Assembly (NCBI GenBank): GCA_965285935.1
Contig: OZ260663.1
Coordinates: 55,056,001-55,120,000, forward strand
Reading direction: 5' to 3'
DNA: 64,000 nt
From: Ophelia neglecta
Lineage: Eukaryota
Shown: positions 2,601-14,600 of the stretch, piece by piece
Position numbering within the stretch: the first letter of the stretch is position 1
How the letters are laid out: every line of letters starts with the position of its first letter
Made by a program: the position numbers and the translations under genes
Notes under the pieces: generated by a model
Database searches by the model: none
The model's input: only the letters and a program-made list of their open reading frames with translations
What the model was told of the DNA's origin: nothing

Positions 2601-5600
2601 CTGGAAAGAGGCAGCAAGAAATCTGCTCAGTTTTGGATTCAGATTAGATTTTAATTGTGTTAATAGCTTCATCTACTGATTACAATGACAAACATGCTGC
2701 TGTGGCTAAATTAGCTAGGCTGGGCTGGGTGTGTAGAGAACTGGACTGGAGGAGACATGGGGCAGTGACTTTTAGTCCTGATTCTATGGAACTCTGTTGA
2801 TTAGGCATACAGCAGAATTGACATAAAACCAGGTCTCAACATTTTAGAAATTTCAAATTTAAATATGGAAAAGAACTCACAGTTTTCCTGAAATAGTCTT
2901 AATTTAAAATCAACTAGATAAGATACCCCCTGAATACTGGGCTAGATGTGTATTGTCTCCACAAACTGAGATTAGTTGGGCATCCACAGGGTTATACTGT
3001 CAAAAAGTAAATTTAGATGGTTAGTAACATGGTATGACTATGTGATCATAGATACCAGCCACCAACCAAGTTCCCCCAAACCATAATCCTTATAATATAA
3101 AGACCACCAATCCAAAGGCCCACCAAAAGACCCTGTAAGAAATCTGCCCACCTCAGAAACCCAAGCCAAGCAATCTATTGCACCAGCCACCAGCTAATAA
3201 ATAGATTAGCATGAAAACATTTTGGTATGAGGTTATGAAGGAAATATTTTGATAATTATTTCTGAGGATGGGCAATGAATAGCATAAATATCTCTGAAAC
3301 ATCACTACATGACATATACTTCCTTCATAACTTCAAAATAATAACTAACATAAATAATGCTGGGTAATAGGATGCCTTAATACATTAAAATATGCAGACT
3401 TTTTCCAATGTTTTACAACCCATACCAAGTTGCAGACCACCCACAATTTCTCTGTAAAAATAAATAAATTCCTTCAAAAAGGAGGAGGTATCCCACCATA
3501 AAATCCACTTCCACCAAACCGTTGTTTCAAATGAGTTAATTAACATATGGCTAACAGCCTTCCATACTTAATTTAAATGAACACTAGTGATCTTAAAGTC
3601 ATCATGACTATTTTCCATCAGACCACACAAAACCTAATGCATCCTGTCACCCATTCATAACAAGCAATGTTTAATTTCATATAAATTTATGTAGAAATAA
3701 TCAACCATTATGTATCAAAATGGTTGATAACTCCTACACACATTGCACTAACATCTCATGCTTTTTTTGGTATTTATATATACAAACATAGTTACAGTTA
3801 AGAAGGTCACCAATGTGTCACTTTTCAGGTCAGCATGGGAGTGGCACATTTCTACACAACATAATAGTTTAAAAAAATATAAAAACAATTCTGCCTTCTG
3901 AACAGGTGTGCCTCTTGATGGCCAACCGATGGTAACACATTGATGACCAATGTTCACTATCATCAGAAAAACCAGGCTCCTAAGTATACACCTTGGCAAA
4001 AAGGAGGTTAACCTAAGATTTATAGCATTTTTATTTAGTGTGCAAATAAAATATGCAGATTGTAAATGGCATCTCCGGTGTTCTTAATGTTTGAAGTTTA
4101 ATTTTTTCTTCTTTTGCTAAGGTGCAGACTCGTGAGGAACTAGGGTATATTGTCTTACATAAAGATAGAGTTAAGTGTGTTTGCCTGATACATACCTTAC
4201 CGGCCATGGCAGCCTGCTGAGCAATGTCCAAAGGAGGTCCCAAGGACCTCCCTGGTAGCTCCTCTGTTTTCTCCTCCTCCCTACGCTTTAAGCATGCTGC
4301 CTTAGGGTTTAAGTTGCGCTCTGGAAATAAGCACACATTAAAATATGAGTTTCAAATTGATAAACTTGACAGATTACTAACTATCAAAACTGCTATTCAC
4401 ACCAAATAGAAACCAGATACACCTGAATATCTTATACTTTATTATTTTATTTATATATATCATACAATAACAATATTTAAAGAAATGTTCCATAGCATGC
4501 TTGAATACAGGCAGACATATAAATACAAAATGCTGTTAGGACATTTTTTTCTTCAATAAACCATAACCAGGGGTTAGTGGCCACTCTAGCTTAATTCTCA
4601 ATTAAAAGCGTTTACACACATAAAATATACACACTTGGGTTAACATAATATAATAATAAATGCTGTTAGTCCACAACAGAACATTACCTCTGACTTGCTG
4701 CTCTAAACTGGTTATTACTGACACTGCATGTTGCAAGATAGTCAGCTTTGTTTGGGGTTTGTCCGTGCTAAGGTGAAGTGAGCACATGCGACCCAATTCT
4801 TTGAAGGCCCCGTTGATATCACGCACACGTATCCTGTGGGGGAAGAGAGAAGACGGGAGTTTGGAGGTTGTTCATGCATGCACTCACATTCATACTAGCA
4901 GAGGTGGATTTAGAAACCATTGGGATAGAGGGGCGAGGGCATTATTGACAAAGTAGGGTTCCCAGGGTATTCCCATACGGACTTGGGTAGGATATGGGGC
5001 ATCTCTCGTAGGATTTTTTTTGGTCAGTGTCAGGGCTTGGGCCCAAGTCTTGCCGAGCAACACGGCTAGTACAATTCCTTCTGCAGCCTCTCAGGACTGT
5101 TCTGGCTTTTTCAAACATGCAAGCAAACCATGCAGAAGCATTCTGTGTCAAGGCCACTTGTAGATCAGGCAATCGGTTGCTTGAGAGTGGTTTTTACCTC
5201 GGACTTGTTGCTCAAGGGTAGTGATGACATTGACTGCCTGCTGCAGAATCATCAGCTTGGTCATCGGCTGACCATTGCTAGTATGGATAGAGATCATGTG
5301 ACCTAACTCTTTGAATGCTTCGTTTATGTCCCGTACTCGTAATCTGTTGGGCAATCCAGTGGCATTGAGAATTAGAATGGACAATACCTTAACAGCATAT
5401 ACAAGAAAACAAGCACAGTAAAAATGTCCAATCAACTGTTTATCATACACTATCAGCAACATAAGAAATTAATTTTCACTTATATTTACTTGTTATTTTT
5501 CCAATTTATATTTTCAGAAAATTGTATGTTCCTTGTTATTCTGTGTACTCCTGTGTCAACTTAGCCAACAACACTTTTGCTCTTTTCTCCGTAAACTTTC

Positions 5601-8600
5601 ATCAACACCAGCTGCCTTTAGCCTTACCTTTCTCTAGCATTATTAGCCTGCCGCCGCAATCGTTCACGCTCTGCTTTAGATTCTGGGCTCTCATTGGGAT
5701 CATCTTCCTCCTCGTTTCTGTAAAAGCCAAACAATCTATCACATCCGTAATAATGGGTGATGAAAATAATTGGCACAATGGCACCCTACCATAATCACAA
5801 GAATTAAAATGGGTTTTCCCAAAATGGACATTAATATAACTTAATGCATCCAGAAACCACATAAGGTGTTGAGAATGCTAAAAACAGGCAAATAATGGGC
5901 AACAGGGAGCTCTTAGAGTGGCTTGTACTAGCACATTCCGCATGTCAATGAGAAGGTTAAATAAAATATTCCCCTCATCACTTGAAGAAGTCCTGAACAG
6001 ATATTCTGATGTGAAATCAACTTACTCTGAATCAAGACTTGGTCCAAGCGAGTCCCTACAATCACAAGGGGAAACAAAAATAACATGAAATGGTAGAAAT
6101 AAAACAAGGTTTTGCCATACACTTTAGAAACCACTACTAGGGTGGAGAGACTGTGAAGACAGGGTGGTATATATGATGATAATGCTACCCTGCTTACACT
6201 GGCCCTACTATGACTTTAGCCATACAGAACATTGACATATTACCAAATGATTACTATTTTGTGCAGCTCATGTGCAAACAAAAGTTAATTAAATAATGCA
6301 AAGGATCCAAAATTTGGATGTTTTAATGGGTGACCTAGTCCATGTGGTCTTTTGGTTGCCTAAGGCTAGTATGTCTGAGAATAATATTAAAGCAAAGACA
6401 GCCATGAAAGCCGAGGAAATATATTAATACTGAGAAATTGTTCATTGGAGGCCTGGGGAAAAAAAGCATAATTTTTACTTAGTACTCTGACAAATAATGG
6501 AGCATTATACAACTTAACCAGTTAGCAAGCGAATCCAAAAAAACATCGAGAAATCAATATGGTTGGCATGCTAGTTTGAAGTGTTAAATACAAGGATATA
6601 TGCCTATATATAAATATATATATCAGGAGAACCCTATCCGTTCAAAGGAACAGATTAGGTTTTTACTGGCTATTATCTCTGAATCACTGAAGAAACCAAG
6701 TTGAAATTGGCTTGTATAAATTTTGAACATTCTGCGACAATAAATAAGCAAATAAAAAACAAAAGAACACCTTATACCAGCAGACTGGTTGGAATTGGCA
6801 TTTATACCAATTAATATCAAAACTATCAACTATATAGTCATTTCCTATCCATATAAAGTTTCTAGTATCTAAATAGAATTTTTATTTTCATTAGTACAAG
6901 TCGACTCAGTGTGCCAGTAGGTTTTTACTTACTGCCTTGATCTTTTGGATGGCGGAGCACCACTCTGTGGTGTCAAAGGAGAAGTCATATCTGACAGTGA
7001 TCCCGAAGTGCGACCAGATTCCTTCATTTTTTGGTCTTTCTTACTACTTTCATCGGCCGTTTTTTCAACTTTCAATTTTTCTATTTTTATGTGGCCATCC
7101 GTAGTTTGTTCTGTTGGTTGTTCATTTCTTAAGTCTATAAATGTGGGTACAAAATATAGATTAGGTAATGGAAATTGAAAGCAAATCAGTGCATGATGAT
7201 AATTAATATACTAGATACATGGTCAGTTTCTGGAATTCTTTATTGCAAGAAAGATATGTTCTTAATACATAAATATGAAGATATTTTATACACAAGGGAT
7301 GCTCCTTCTACACAGTTCTTGTAGATTGTTTATTAATCTATTTTAATGTAAATATATTCTTACTATTGACAGATGATTGATCCGGGCCTGTGTGTCTATT
7401 ATGTGATCGCTCATCTGATAATGATGTGTGGTTGCCACCCTGAAATAATTGAGGAAAATTAATATGTAAATATGATATGTATTATGAGAGCTGCCTGTGA
7501 CTGGGTTGAGTATGAGTGATGGTAGATTATGAGGGAGTGACAGCCTGTTATATTTGACCCTGGGTATATATCTGGCCCTGGGTATATGATGGTTGATTAT
7601 GAGGGAGAGATAGGCTGTTGACCCTGGGTATATGCTGTCCCATGTTACCCTTTTCATCGCCCCGCCTTGTCTGATGAGGCAGGCTGGTTTCCCTGACCCT
7701 CCTCCACCCGTGCCAGCCTCTCCCCACTCCACATGTGTGACTTGTTAGAGGACGCTCCTACTATTAACCACCCTCCCTCTTCACCGCAGTCAAGTTCATC
7801 CCTGGTCACTGAAAACAGGAATAAATGACTCCAACTTTGACCCACACCCTCAAATTTATCCACATGATATTGACTTCCACTGCGTCAGGCACTGCACAGT
7901 GACTTCTCCAATTTGACAGAAGGAGGCAAGAAAATTGCACCTTCAATCTCTCTACACCATTTGCCATCTGGTTGCATTATACAGCATAGGAGGGGACAGT
8001 TTTCAACACTTTGACAGCTACAGAAAGTGAAATCAGAGGCATGTTTTGTTGGAACTGGATACCTGCCATACACCATGATATTAGGTGATATGTGTCAGGG
8101 AGAGAGATGGCACCTGGGTGCGGGGTTGCTCCAGAGCGGTCCTAAGGAGGGCCTCACTACAGGTATGGGGAGCTAGCCATGATACAGCACCATGCCAGCC
8201 CCAGGCCCACTCACAAGCACCTGTTGTACTTCAGCTACTGCTCAGCTACAAGCTGGATACAGTTTCTATCACATCCTCCACATCTACACACCCCACTCCC
8301 ATCAGTATGGTGAATGTCAATTAACCCATCAACACAATGGGACTGGCTCAGACCACCTACAATCATGGATCTCTCTAAAAACCAAGCCAATCAACTATCT
8401 ACACTCATCATTCCATCATACCTACAGCAGCCAATCCTAACTCACACTTCCTCTTGTCATCTCTTTGTTAAAACCATACCTCGCTGCCACATAATGCCAC
8501 ACAGCACTACTTACAACTAGATTTTCTAAATGTTACAGAGAAGGCGTAAGCAAAGGGGGGATTAAAAGAAACTGATCTCCTACCAAATCATAATGGTATC

Positions 8601-11600
8601 CATAGAAGTCCTGTGCATTGGTGTATTGTAGACTGGTATTGTACGGCTGTACTTGGTTTCCATGATATGTATTGTAAGGTAGAGTGGTATTGTTCTGTAG
8701 AGAGCCTTGCTGGTCCTGAATGGCACTCGGGTTGTATTGTGCAGCGTTGTTGTACCACGTACCACCTGAGGCGTACCCCTGTTGGTAGGCTGGTGGGAAC
8801 TGGGATATATCCAGTGGAAACTGGGAATACCACATGGTGCCGTTTCTCACACCATTAGCCACTAAAATATATCCAAATAGCTAAAGGAAGCTAGGACTGT
8901 CAGTGGAATTAAGGCTCATTAAGTTTCCTTGAAGTCATCAAGGGAGGAGAGCTTTGCCAATAAAGATGGTTGTATGACGGGTCCTTAGCCTGCTCTGGCC
9001 CTTCCCCTTCCGATCCAAGCCTACTCCCAGCCTACTCCACTCTGAAGCTTTTTCCAAATCTTTCACGATATGCTGGCTTGATTTGTTCAAGACCTGCCCA
9101 TCTTGAAGTATTTTGTACCAGTTGAATATACACAGATGGAAAACATTGGAAACAATTATCTTTGAAGCAGCTCATTGAGCAATATTGACCAACAGTCATA
9201 GAGAGCAGCATCCAATCACAGGGGCACAATCTTACCATCAGAACTTGGAAACCCAACTAGCCAGATACTTGGGGGCTTTGGAAAGATAACATCTAGCATA
9301 ACTGGTTACATGTGGTTCACATTATCTATGATGTTGAGATATACCATCTGAGCACTCAACATGTAATTTTTTTGAACTTTTTCTTACACACCCTTATGCT
9401 AATGCCCTTGGCACAGTTTTAATTTGAAAGCCATGCAATCACACACCATTGCCTGGAATGCGACTTTCAAGCATTTTGGGCCTGTGGTTTTCAAGATGAG
9501 TGTACATGCCTGCTATGTGGGAGTGCGACCAGTGATTTTGCCACTGTATATTTTGAATGATGTGCGAGGACATCTGAGCAGGTATGATATGATGTATTTA
9601 TATTACCCTCCTCTGTTCCTGCCGTTTTTCTAGAACATGTTTGATCTGTTTTGACACAAGAAGCAGAGACTCCTTCCCACTCCTTCCCAGCAACAGTTCT
9701 ACCTTGACACATGTAGTTGCTATGGAAACCAGGGGATCAACCCATCAATAATTACTTTCAGAGTGATCTGATGGGCAGATCTGAGAGGCGGCTGATGTTT
9801 ACACTGGTGACTTTGTAAACTGTAGATTCTCAGGGAGGTGGGTAGGGTTCCCTGCCTTTGACAGTTACAAAATAAACAAAGTGGCCTCAGTAGCTCCAGA
9901 TGTTGTGTACATCTCTGGCAGATACTAGCCTTCTGTGCTGGTCCCAGTCTTCTCTACAGACTAATTAGCTCATTTAGATAATCTCTCATCAAATGTAAGC
10001 AGAATACTCCTTGAAATATCATGGCGTTCTCTATGATGAAAGTTGGCTCAGCTTGGGCTTCAAACGAGCAGGGTCATGTTATGAGAACACATCAAAATGC
10101 TCACCTGGTTTCAATCAGGATCATCCTGGAGTAAGACAGCTCAGCAAGCTTTATGAGCACTATTTACCAAATTCATCTTCACTATGTGATGATCCCAGCC
10201 TCTTTAACGTGCTAAAAGGTGTCCATGCCTTCCACTAAAGCATCTTTGGAGAGCAATTCTCTCAAACCATGATCTTGAAGGTCAGCACAAGTAATTTCAG
10301 ATAAAGAATTTATGGAACTACAGATTTTTATTGTATATTGTCATATTTCCCCCCTTAGAGCAGTCAGGGCCAATTATGGCCTCAATAATGGAGTAGTGTT
10401 TCTGATGTAAATAAATCACCTGCCCTGGCCAGTCTGTTATAGATGAGTAGTCCAGCTGAGCCCAAGTGTTCGTGTTCATTTGCTTGTATGACATCACTTT
10501 GTAGATGTATCCCTCAGCTGTGTCTAAAACCTGAAGCAGGCCTCCATTACAGTACAGCACAGGCAGCCGACCCCTGCAACTTTGGTCAATATTTTGAGAC
10601 AGTATAACCCCGAGGTATGGCACCTTGTCAGAGCCCTGCTTCCAATTGCCCCGCTATTTACAGAGAAGACCCTGTGTAATTTTCCCCATACTTTCCATAA
10701 TTTTCCCCATACTTTCCTTTCGGTAATTAGCCATTAAATCGAGATGCCCCTGTGATTTTATTGGCTCCATCTTTGCTAGTAAAGCGATTCCTGGTTGTTT
10801 CCTGCCCAGTTGTTCTGTGGGGTTTGTGTAGTGGCTACAAGAGAAGATTGGCATAAGGGCAGAGAGAAACAACAAATTTGCATTCTCCGGTAGACCACAC
10901 GCGCTTGGGGGTTAATTCTGCACAGGACTGAAGCTCAAAACCTGTGGTGAACTCTTATTGGAGGGACAGAGGACTGAGAATAAATTCTAATCATCAGTAA
11001 TTGTTTGATGACTAGACTGTCAAAATGAAATCACAGCCTACCAGTTTCATGTCAATCATACAATCTCTCTGACTTACATCTTACAAAACTGATGACAACA
11101 AAAAGGCAATTGCTCAAATGTCAAGCAGCAACATACTAAAACAATTATTTATTTATAATGTTTTTTTTATCACTGTCCAAAATAGTTTGTGTATAAATAA
11201 TGTATGATAAAGTTCTTGCACACAAAATTAATGACTCGTAGGTTTTCTTATTTATCGTATAAGCAGGCAATATCTTACCATGTGTGATTCCATCATGCCC
11301 ATGCCCGGCGGGTATGCTGTGCCCATGTTGCCGGACATGAAGCCATTGGAATGTGGTCCGGGCATCATCCCGGGCATGTGCCCAGGGGGCATCATTTGGC
11401 CTGACTCCGCATGGTTTCGTAAGACATGGATGGCATCGTCCAGCCGTTCCTCCATTTTGCTTTGCTATAAGAAAATATCTTGGTAATAATACGTTGACAA
11501 TTTATTTTCAGGCATTGTCATTTTTGTTAATGCCAGTTAAGTTGGAATCCTTGTTAGTAACATTGAAACATTTATATGTTTTACTAGAAGTGATGAGGTG

Positions 11601-14600
11601 CTATGTAGAAAAAGGTTTTATTAGTTCAAATTTATGTTGTAAATGCTACAAGGCCAGATATTTGATAGGTGTACAATGTGGTTAGAACTGGTCATTCTAG
11701 AAGGTTCCTTTGAGGAAATGTTTCGGACCCATTTATCAGATGAGACCGGCCATTTTCACATCAGTTTCAAGATACCTGCCAGGTCCTGAGATTCTCAATT
11801 TCTGCTCCAAATTAGCAAGACCTGCAAACTCAAATATCTCAGATTTCCTTTGGACATTCGAAAATGTAATGGGTAATACTATTCAGCAGTTGTCAATTAG
11901 TGGGAACCACATATCTCCAAAACTCCGGGGTTCTGGTGCCTACTACTGTGTGATGAGGCTTCCTGCTGCCCGAAGCTTGGCCAATACATATTTTCATGAA
12001 TATTTAGGATTTATCCCAGCAGGTCACTCTGGTTAAAATGTATTCTATTTCTTTGTAGAGCTGGAGGTGGCTCTGGCTTAAACTTGCCATTTTCTCATCA
12101 ATTTGGAGGTAGCTATTGAGTTAGCATCCTGATAGACCATTTTTACCCTGACTTTCACCCAAAGTGGTTGACGTCTGCCAGGATGGTATTGTTTATCTTG
12201 GCACCTTTTTCTTCCTCCCTCAGTAGATTTCTCTTCCCCCACCAAATCTGTTACCCATCTGATGTACAGGTAAAAAACTCAGGCTGGGTGCAGCCTATAA
12301 AACATCAGTGTTTGTCTTGTCAGAAAATGTTTCCACATGTGCAAGATGTGTACAAATGTCAAAACTTTTATTACCGCTGTTCATTTCAATAACAGACAGA
12401 ATTTTGGTGCGATCTTGCCTAAATATTGATAGGATTTGCCCAGCATGAAAGGTGACGATATGCTTTCCAGATATGCCTTGATCTGTTGTATTGATGACAG
12501 CTTCCCAACACTCAAATCTACATCTATGAGCCTTTTTTGAATGCTAACCACAGAAATACAAATCCAAGCAGAGAACTACACTAAAAGAGACTGACATATT
12601 ACAGGGCATAAATTAATTAAAAGCCAACCGACACCCAGCAGTCCAACACCTTTATCTAATATGCTAAACCACAGTAGTTCTACAAAACTTCTTTATAGGC
12701 TCTCTCACCATATCTCAGAAAGATAAAATGCATTTTCAAAAGCCAATGATGCCATCACCCTGCTCAAGCTACTCATTATGTGGTAATCAATCCGTGTGTA
12801 TTTGTGTGCACCATGCATCCCTGGACCTGTATCAGGTACTCTTAATAACAAGCCTTTAATTTATCTTTTCAATGCAAAGTTTTTGAGGTAAAATGCATCC
12901 GATGTTGGGGTTACCTCTGCCTGGTCCCGTAAATAGTGAATAGCATCATCTAACTTCTCTTCCATTCTTGAAGTCTATTGGCCAGTGTGAAAAAACACCA
13001 AAGATGATTTGCGATGGACACAACTCTTATTAATGCTTATTATGGTCATTTTATGAATTAGTTAGTCAGGTAACACATTAAGTGCCCAGAGATGAGACAT
13101 GTTTGTTTAACACCAGTGCCACAGGAATGTTAAAGAAAACTGTGAAACTTCCCAATTATTGCTGTGTGCCGACCAGTCAATATACTGATACACAAAATTA
13201 AATACAACATGCAAAAAAATGTGAACTAGAACTAGAATTAAAAGTAGCAATAACAAACTACAACCATCAAGTTATAAACATCAAGATGCAGGAGCAAATC
13301 TACAATTCTACCACTATCAATACTCCTGGACTGGCCATTCAGAGCTCGCCGCTATCACCAACTTCTTACATTTACACACAAGGCGTTGTATATATATATA
13401 TATATATGTATGTCTTCGCCTGTCCATGCTTGGTGAAACTTTACAAATTTACCAGATTAGAATCTACAAAATACCAGAATATGGATTTACAGGCTCTTGA
13501 CTTCTAAATTTATAAACAGATTGCAATTTAGGAAATACTATAATGCAATAGAAATTAAGTAGATGCTTAAGTAAATCAGAATGTATTTCAAAAAGCATGG
13601 TCAGAGCAGAACTGATTTACTAAAGAATGGGTGAATAAAAGTGTTGATTTACATTTGGCCGGCTTACCAGTGAGTGGAGGTGGCTTTCAAAATGGGGTGA
13701 GGTAGTGCTTGTGGTGGCTGGCCCCGGCCGCGCCCACTGCTGGCTTGGGGGACCTGAAACAATGGTGAGAACATGGTGAGATCAGGGAGAGGACATGGTG
13801 AGAACACAGTGAAAACAGGGTGAGAATTAAGTAAGGGTGAGAATAAGTTGGAGAAACTAAATGAGACTTGGTCGGGACTTAAAGATACTGAGAGTGGAAC
13901 ATAATATCAATTACACCAAATCTATAATATGAGCTTGTTTTTTCTGTTTTATGCACAGTTCATTTTCATCCTGAAAGGTTTGGGATTTAAACATAATTTA
14001 AAACAAATTCAATCAACAGGGTTTTTATTTTAATTAAATCAAAGTGTAAAAAACAGGGCACTTGCATATATTTATAATTAACGACTAAAACATGGATTAA
14101 TATCCTAAACAGATAGATTGCTTTTTCCCAAATTACAGAAATACTGAAAGGCACCGAAAATCGGAATGGCTCCAAAAAAAATCGGTCTTCGAAAACTAAA
14201 GTGCAGATTATTTATGACCAACATTTTGAAGAGTTTCCTGTTATAATGGTCTCTCTAAGTATATTGAGGATGTCTGTATCCACTAAACACAAATGCTCTC
14301 CAACTGGTAACAGCTGATCAGGTGATTAAGGGCAGCAAACACAACAAGGCAATTGTTTTCTTGCTCAATGGTGCATCAAAAGGGCCTCAGATGGTGGGCG
14401 TGGGGAAGTGCCCTCGGAGAATTAGGGCCAAGAAGCTGTGAATGAGGGACAGCTCTGACATACTGTTGCCAGGTAGTACACATGGACAAGTGTACTAGAT
14501 GGTTTGCTCTCACTGATCACCAGCAGACTAGGGCTGGTGGAATTACACAGCAGCAATTGTTTCTTGTCCTGATTCCCAAACAGATTTGTTTATACACAAA

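Follow-up and report, generated by a model that had tools for sequence, protein, structure and literature searches.

MyoD, NeuroD, Twist and other tissue-specific basic helix-loop-helix (bHLH) factors have E proteins as their common partners. In one of these E proteins, TCF12, the inclusion of exon 15 follows the neuronal versus mesenchymal state of cells, the differentiation of muscle and leukaemia. Exon 15 of TCF12 comprises 72 bp coding for 24 residues, is located in the activation domain and has been termed ankyrin-like (PMC5852603, PMC12699894, PMC12034182). Human exon 16 corresponds to Gln421-Met489 and is a part of AD2, with the same Q...M limits as the AD2 exon studied here (PMC12034182). 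In this work, a 60-nt exon located at the corresponding junction of an E-protein gene of the annelid Ophelia neglecta was analysed in a 64,000-nt stretch of contig OZ260663.1 (assembly GCA_965285935.1, positions 55,056,001-55,120,000 of the forward strand), which is referred to as the window. The results show that the exon is a duplicate from the neighbouring AD2 exon and is conserved in annelids, and they make it likely that, when included, it adds a second coactivator-docking helix to the protein.

The interaction of the AD2 helix with the KIX domain has been characterized with peptides of E2A. The AD2-1 peptide has a Kd of 17 μM for the MLL/PCET site of KIX, the L397A, I401A and L404A substitutions in the motif weaken the binding 5-6-fold, and the AD2-2 motif next to AD2-1 gave no cooperativity (PMC4066744). 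The KIX binding by the AD2 helix (LDxAIxVL), which the original prediction had stated, is thereby backed by the published measurements (PMC4066744).

The candidate cassette exon is situated on the minus strand at 12915-12974 and consists of 20 sense codons in phase 0/0 which encode a 20-residue copy of the AD2 helix. Its 3' splice site (12975-13010, minus strand) has the AG at 12976-12975 (...ccaatAG) and an interrupted pyrimidine tract before the AG, and its 5' splice site (12909-12914, minus strand) reads GTAACC, without a G at +5. The exon upstream of the cassette (13668-13753, minus strand) ends with ...HLHSL, followed by GTAAGC. On the other side, after 1,450 nt of DNA, lies the AD2 exon (11279-11464, minus strand), which has 62 codons in phase 0/0, carries the canonical AD2 helix at its start and is the source of the duplicate. 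As the cassette is 60 nt long with both ends in phase 0 and the AD2 exon also starts in phase 0, the included and skipped forms are both in frame. The predicted frame-neutral exon, open and bounded by AG and GT, was found at exactly the proposed position. The accompanying statement that the copy directly precedes the AD2 helix applies to the spliced form, whereas in the DNA the two are 1,450 nt apart.

The cassette shares 14 of its 20 residues with the first 20 residues of the AD2 exon, one more than had been counted originally. Apart from the cassette, 20-residue windows in the six reading frames of the 64 kb matched the AD2 helix at 8/20 positions at best, and a search of the whole 762-Mb assembly returned the AD2 exon and the small exon as the AD2-helix matches and none besides. 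The latter result indicates a single E-protein gene in O. neglecta. With a helix profile built from AD2 helices and cassettes, the AD2 exon scored 51.7 bits on the gene strand, the cassette 44.6 bits and the next site 8.8 bits. The motif of the cassette is L-D-D-A-I-H-Y-L and that of the AD2 class is L-[DE]-[DE]-A-I-H-V-L, so that the Leu, Ala, Ile and Leu positions are kept. The claim of an AD2-helix duplicate was thus confirmed, and a chance open reading frame (ORF) was rejected, since the runner-up in the window reached just 8/20.

In their nucleotide sequences, the two copies agree in 36 of 60 nt, with 14, 15 and 7 identities out of 20 at the first, second and third codon positions, respectively. 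Of the conserved residues with a choice of codon, 10 of 13 are encoded by different codons in the two copies. A recent duplication or gene conversion was rejected due to this saturation of the synonymous sites. The retention of the residues together with the scrambled third positions points to an old duplicate, the peptide of which has been under purifying selection.

The 2.5 kb that span the upstream exon, the cassette and the AD2 exon were also compared with the locus of another annelid, Lamellibrachia; the three exons aligned and nothing else did. The two cassettes were 78.6% identical over 56 nt (E value 2e-8), and the cross matches between cassette and AD2 exon were 71-74%. Since only the exons align and the cassette matches the Lamellibrachia cassette best, it represents a conserved island with an orthologue in another annelid family. 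The ending ..LRDQ.. of the small exon is annelid-specific and common to the window, Lamellibrachia and Owenia. The possibility that the stretch is a dead relic of the duplication, a pseudo-exon which is never used, is hardly credible: the frame is open, splice sites are present, and the peptide has been conserved while the synonymous sites and introns were saturated. Its sequence marks the small stretch as a true coding exon that has been maintained by selection.

Counterparts of the exon were searched among E proteins which were gathered by a search with an HLH exon and by two region-restricted searches. In the protein models, a helix-like segment x was present at the junction ...LHSL|x|QS(K/R)MEERLDD in annelids (Lamellibrachia P0188:243-262; Owenia P0268), gastropods (Pomacea P0177:334-353; Haliotis P0179:431-452; Bulinus P0207), bivalves (Magallana, Crassostrea, Ostrea and Pinctada; oysters P0190/P0201/P0202), nemerteans (Tubulanus P0194), spiders (Stegodyphus P0206:321-340; Trichonephila P0209) and ostracods (Cyprideis P0012; Darwinula P0007). 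In the DNA, the segment forms an exon of its own, flanked by AG and GT, in Lamellibrachia (L005:18360-18419, the orthologue at the DNA level) and in Pinctada (L006:33269-33337). The ostracod copies (L007, L008) are likewise separate exons with AG and GT, ending straight after the helix. The annotations differ in the use of the exon: of the isoforms of Haliotis cracherodii, P0186 contains it and P0189 does not, and it is present in the gene model of Lamellibrachia and absent from that of Ridgeia. The presence in several protostome phyla supports the view that an exon of this kind is far older than the vertebrates, and the protostome exons very probably share common descent.

The vertebrate TCF12 exon 15 was compared using sequences of non-human vertebrates. 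The 72-nt/24-residue exon at the LHSL|...|QSRME junction, as described in the original prediction, was found in the TCF12 proteins of these species and agrees with the published descriptions (PMC5852603, PMC12699894, PMC12034182). It was also detected in a hagfish homologue and in a second shark paralogue (Pristis P0291), which is 62% identical to Pristis TCF12 (P0279). Its occurrence in the hagfish and in both shark paralogues implies that the exon predates those gene duplications. According to the annotation, the hagfish TCF12-like isoform P0167 carries the exon and P0168 lacks it. Within each of the hagfish isoform pairs P0166/P0167 and P0168/P0170, the members differ by one Gln where the AD2 exon begins, a difference that a tandem CAG-CAG acceptor would produce.

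Exon 15 of TCF12/HEB, known from HEB-beta and rat REB, resembles the window exon in gene family, intron, phase 0/0 and frame neutrality, and its use in vertebrates is alternative. In an alignment of 16 tandem-helix sequences, the vertebrate insert was in register with the protostome exons; two Leu columns were invariant, the Ala column was nearly so and the Ile/Met column was near-invariant. The proposed profile alignment of the window exon, the TCF12 cassette and the AD2 helix was therefore obtained in register and with the L..A(I/M)..L pattern kept, and the TCF12 exon and the window exon also share an acidic residue at the position of the AD2 Asn. The TCF12 exon differs from the window exon in having 24 instead of 20 codons, and the two have only about 7 identities.

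Published work, including that from 2025-26, describes exon 15 as ankyrin-like, and no description of the insert as an AD2 duplicate was found in the papers searched. Pfam scans at E values up to 10, covering the window exon as well as the annelid and mammalian TCF12 regions, matched no ankyrin family. The AlphaFold model of the Lamellibrachia region contained a continuous helix at residues 9-59 (predicted local distance difference test, pLDDT, 76-90), and that of the mammalian TCF12 region contained helices at residues 5-39 and 42-60, with a break of two residues and pLDDT values above 88. An identity with the ankyrin repeat was rejected on account of the missing Pfam match and the plain helix in the models. 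From these models of the orthologous Lamellibrachia and mammalian TCF12 regions, both helix copies are predicted to form helix (pLDDT 76-97).

The exon most likely originated by a tandem duplication of the first approximately 20 codons of the AD2 exon, giving an exon with its own donor just past the helix. With the cassette included, the protein would contain two consecutive amphipathic L-D-D-A-I-H-x-L helices, and with the cassette skipped, one. Inclusion would most likely provide a second docking site for CBP/p300, which may change the activation strength or the choice of partners. The window exon shares with the AD2 helix of E2A the Leu, Ala, Ile and Leu positions that affect the affinity for KIX (PMC4066744). 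It differs from this helix in being an extra upstream copy, in having Tyr in place of Val, and in having Asp-Gln in place of Asn-His after the motif. Since the window exon and nearly all its counterparts keep the KIX-contact positions, the simplest reading is that the inclusion adds a CBP/p300 helix, and we infer that the cassette helix binds KIX.

Tandem KIX motifs are known in p53 and FOXO3a (PMC4066744), and the cassette with the AD2 helix resembles them in forming two adjacent short amphipathic motifs. In all these cases, the tandem motifs could engage two surfaces of KIX or two domains of CBP/p300. Unlike in p53 and FOXO3a, splicing would decide how many motifs the E protein carries. The two helix motifs are spaced by 20 residues in the window gene and by 23 residues in TCF12, which leaves no fixed face geometry and suggests two independent motifs.

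Several observations weigh against the coactivator-docking interpretation or against a single origin and the alternative use of the exon. Caenogastropods (P0175, P0176, P0178) and the nemertean Lineus (P0204) have degenerate cassettes with prolines and a common ..NPIH.. motif, and octopods (P0172, P0071, P0199) have an unrelated insert of 12-13 residues at the cassette junction; the helix-breaking prolines and the unrelated insert indicate that the second helix is not universally required. The insert was reported to lower the E-box binding and the homo- and heterodimers of rat REB (Klein 1993, as cited in PMC13231128 and PMC12699894). Moreover, the crinoid Antedon had no helix-like ORF in its 6.3-kb homologous intron (best score 1.7 bits), and the exon of O. 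neglecta might be constitutive and not a cassette, which we regard as improbable for the reasons given below.

The REB result, as transmitted by the citing papers, would be explained if the extra helix modulates dimerisation or DNA binding, or masks AD2 within the molecule, without adding a coactivator site. The change of 323 genes in both directions after forced inclusion in glioma cells (PMC12699894) is consistent with such a role. In contrast, the cassette is located about 200 residues from the bHLH region, it keeps exactly those positions by which AD2 contacts KIX (PMC4066744), and HEB-beta has been reported to enhance MyoD-driven activation (PMC5852603). A modulating or masking helix is therefore considered rather unlikely, and the additional docking helix is retained as the preferred function.

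A search for sequencing runs of O. neglecta returned three DNA-like runs, all from one study. The constitutive use of the exon would agree with the models of Lamellibrachia, Pinctada and the ostracods, which simply include it. However, the cassette donors of the window, Lamellibrachia and Pinctada are all non-consensus and read without the +5 G. By contrast, GTAAG is read at the donors of the flanking constitutive exons. The lack of the +5 G in all three donors fits regulated use. The exon is also missing in Ridgeia in contrast to Lamellibrachia, and both Haliotis and the hagfish are annotated with and without it. On these grounds, we infer that the exon is used alternatively in O. neglecta.

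The original prediction had pointed to a UGCAUG about 100 nt downstream of the exon. The motif was indeed present at 12812-12817 (minus strand), 99 nt past the cassette donor, at chance frequency: the 1,450-nt intron contained one GCAUG with 1.4 expected. As evidence of regulation, the UGCAUG was rejected because of this chance-level density. Inclusion driven by RBFOX through the downstream UGCAUG would be in agreement with a GCAUG at +69 in Lamellibrachia and a UGCAUG at +245 in Pinctada, so that each of the three species has a (U)GCAUG within the 300 nt that follow the cassette. This is, however, the background density, GCAUG was found upstream of the cassette as well in all three species, and the introns do not align between species. 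Control by RBFOX is accordingly seen as quite unlikely.

A different motif was noted upstream of the cassette. The overlapping ACUAAY pair ACUAACUAAU of the STAR/QKI type is located at 13057-13066 (minus strand), 83-92 nt upstream, and is treated only as a lead. Paired ACUAAY motifs were present 80-230 nt upstream of the cassette in the window, in Lamellibrachia (L005:18160-18359) and in Pinctada (L006:32970-33268). The counts were 2, 4 and 4, respectively, compared with 0.1-0.2 per 300 nt per locus, and the corresponding empirical window fractions were 0.019, 0.011 and 0.002. In Lamellibrachia, about 100 nt before the cassette, including the pyrimidine tract, are tandemly duplicated (L005:18160-18359), resulting in two near-identical acceptor regions. 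As the four ACUAAY motifs of this species lie in the approximately 100-nt tandem repeat, they are not independent, and the ACUAAY pairs could instead reflect a branch-point-like sequence or a repeat. In human TCF12, exon 15 is repressed by QKI, a binder of ACUAAY (PMC13231128), and the inclusion of exon 15 is raised by knock-down of PTBP1 (PMC12699894).

Concerning the origin of the vertebrate exon, the original prediction had left the choice between a diverged AD2-helix duplicate that predates vertebrates and a convergent one. An AD2 duplicate at the same intron and phase was established, and exons of the same kind occur in protostomes; between the two origins, the trees reject neither. The suggested survey of amphioxus, echinoderms and spiralians was answered in part: spiralians have the exon, the crinoid lacks it, and the amphioxus gene is intronless and cannot inform on the exon. 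The sample of non-vertebrate deuterostomes consisted of two species, the crinoid Antedon and amphioxus. The "TCF12-like" gene of Branchiostoma floridae (L003:1001-3061) is one uninterrupted ORF of 2,061 bp, which is retrogene-like and corresponds to the cassette-less form.

If the vertebrate and protostome exons were independent duplications of the AD2 start, selection for an acidic amphipathic helix would have made them alike. Besides the results with the crinoid and amphioxus, this explanation is favoured by the vertebrate exon having 24 rather than 20 codons and by an alternative alignment in which the start of exon 15 is paired with the vertebrate AD2 start carrying an extra RLD. On the other side, the MAFFT alignment of the vertebrate cassette needs no RLD insert, all phyla agree in the intron, in the phase and in an exon end placed directly behind the helix, and the exon is present in the hagfish and in both of the 62% identical shark paralogues. 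At the position of the AD2 Asn, an acidic residue was found in 13 of the 15 tabulated cassettes (17 of all 19) and in none of the AD2 helices examined, including diverged ones.

Small insertions, LD or RLD, were observed to have arisen independently at one spot, the start of the AD2 helix, in a heterobranch and a cerithioid gastropod (P0207, P0174) and in vertebrate TCF4/TCF12. Because of the repeated LD/RLD insertions, this indel is of little use for dating the vertebrate cassette, and the recurrence of small indels at the RLD spot (Bulinus, Batillaria) is also compatible with independent origins.

With position-specific scoring matrices built by leaving one phylum out, the cassettes leaned to the cassette matrix, those of vertebrates by +8 to +20 bits, with one diverged control at +18. 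True AD2 helices, including the crinoid, cnidarian and mite controls, favoured the AD2 matrix by margins of 7-18 bits. An exception was a very diverged bryozoan AD2, which leaned to the cassette matrix and so speaks against a single origin. In the maximum-likelihood tree of 20 columns, which is without power, the labels clustered (3 changes versus 11.4 when shuffled). All the constraints tried on the 20-column trees outscored the quick free tree and none was rejected. The tree joining the vertebrate cassettes with the vertebrate AD2 (approximately unbiased test, p-AU 0.90) was as little rejected as the one with all cassettes in one clade (p-AU 0.88). Since neither view is rejected, the 20-column trees decide nothing on the origin.

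On the strength of the shared acidic residue, exon end and phase, common descent of the protostome exon and the vertebrate TCF12 exon 15 is somewhat favoured. Independent duplications are possible, though not what we would expect. It is proposed only tentatively that TCF12 exon 15 is the survivor of an exon in the protostome-deuterostome ancestor, where it would have switched between one and two CBP/p300-docking helices, perhaps with an old STAR/QKI-type silencer upstream.

The host gene was mapped by tblastn with the E proteins of an octopod (Argonauta), annelids (Lamellibrachia), gastropods (Haliotis), bivalves and a nemertean as queries. One E-protein gene was found on the minus strand, with at least 10 exons placed in succession between about 54.4 kb and 4.2 kb. 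The best overall protein match of the gene was Lamellibrachia satsuma P0188, followed by Ridgeia. Together with the ..LRDQ.. ending, these matches by themselves place the sequence with the lophotrochozoans and most likely with the annelids. The HLH type and the conserved AD2, basic-region and C-terminal exons assign the gene to the E proteins (class I bHLH; TCF3/4/12, daughterless). A part of the basic-region exon was mapped by tblastn to 5627-5710 (minus strand). The Pfam HLH family matched two ORFs in the window, one for each of two alternative HLH exons on the minus strand, of which the first, exon a, is located at 5198-5343 and the second, exon b, at 4688-4833.

The HLH exons a and b are arranged in tandem, are both 146 nt long and have identical phases, similarly to E12/E47. 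They must be mutually exclusive because 146 is not a multiple of 3. The window gene thus resembles TCF3, with its E12/E47 exons, in carrying a tandemly duplicated pair of HLH exons. Unlike this pair, the AD2 duplicate is partial and additive, being cassette-like and not mutually exclusive with its source. An orthologous HLH exon pair was present in Lamellibrachia (85% between the a copies and 79% between the b copies); elsewhere, Pinctada has three a-type copies and Antedon one. In many database models (Lamellibrachia, ostracods, a tardigrade, a moth and reptile E2A), both HLH copies are wrongly strung together.

In O. neglecta, the genome gains a small exon of the sort that automated annotation can miss, and from its sequence features and distribution the exon appears to be an ancient splicing switch that lets the protein carry either one or two activation helices. 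For the family, the papers of 2025-26 still use "ankyrin-like" for the TCF12 insert and speculate that it affects dimerisation. If the insert is read as a duplicate of the KIX-binding AD2 helix, of a kind conserved among the bilaterian phyla, a concrete hypothesis follows that is cheap to test, by which the old question of HEB-alpha versus HEB-beta would become approachable.

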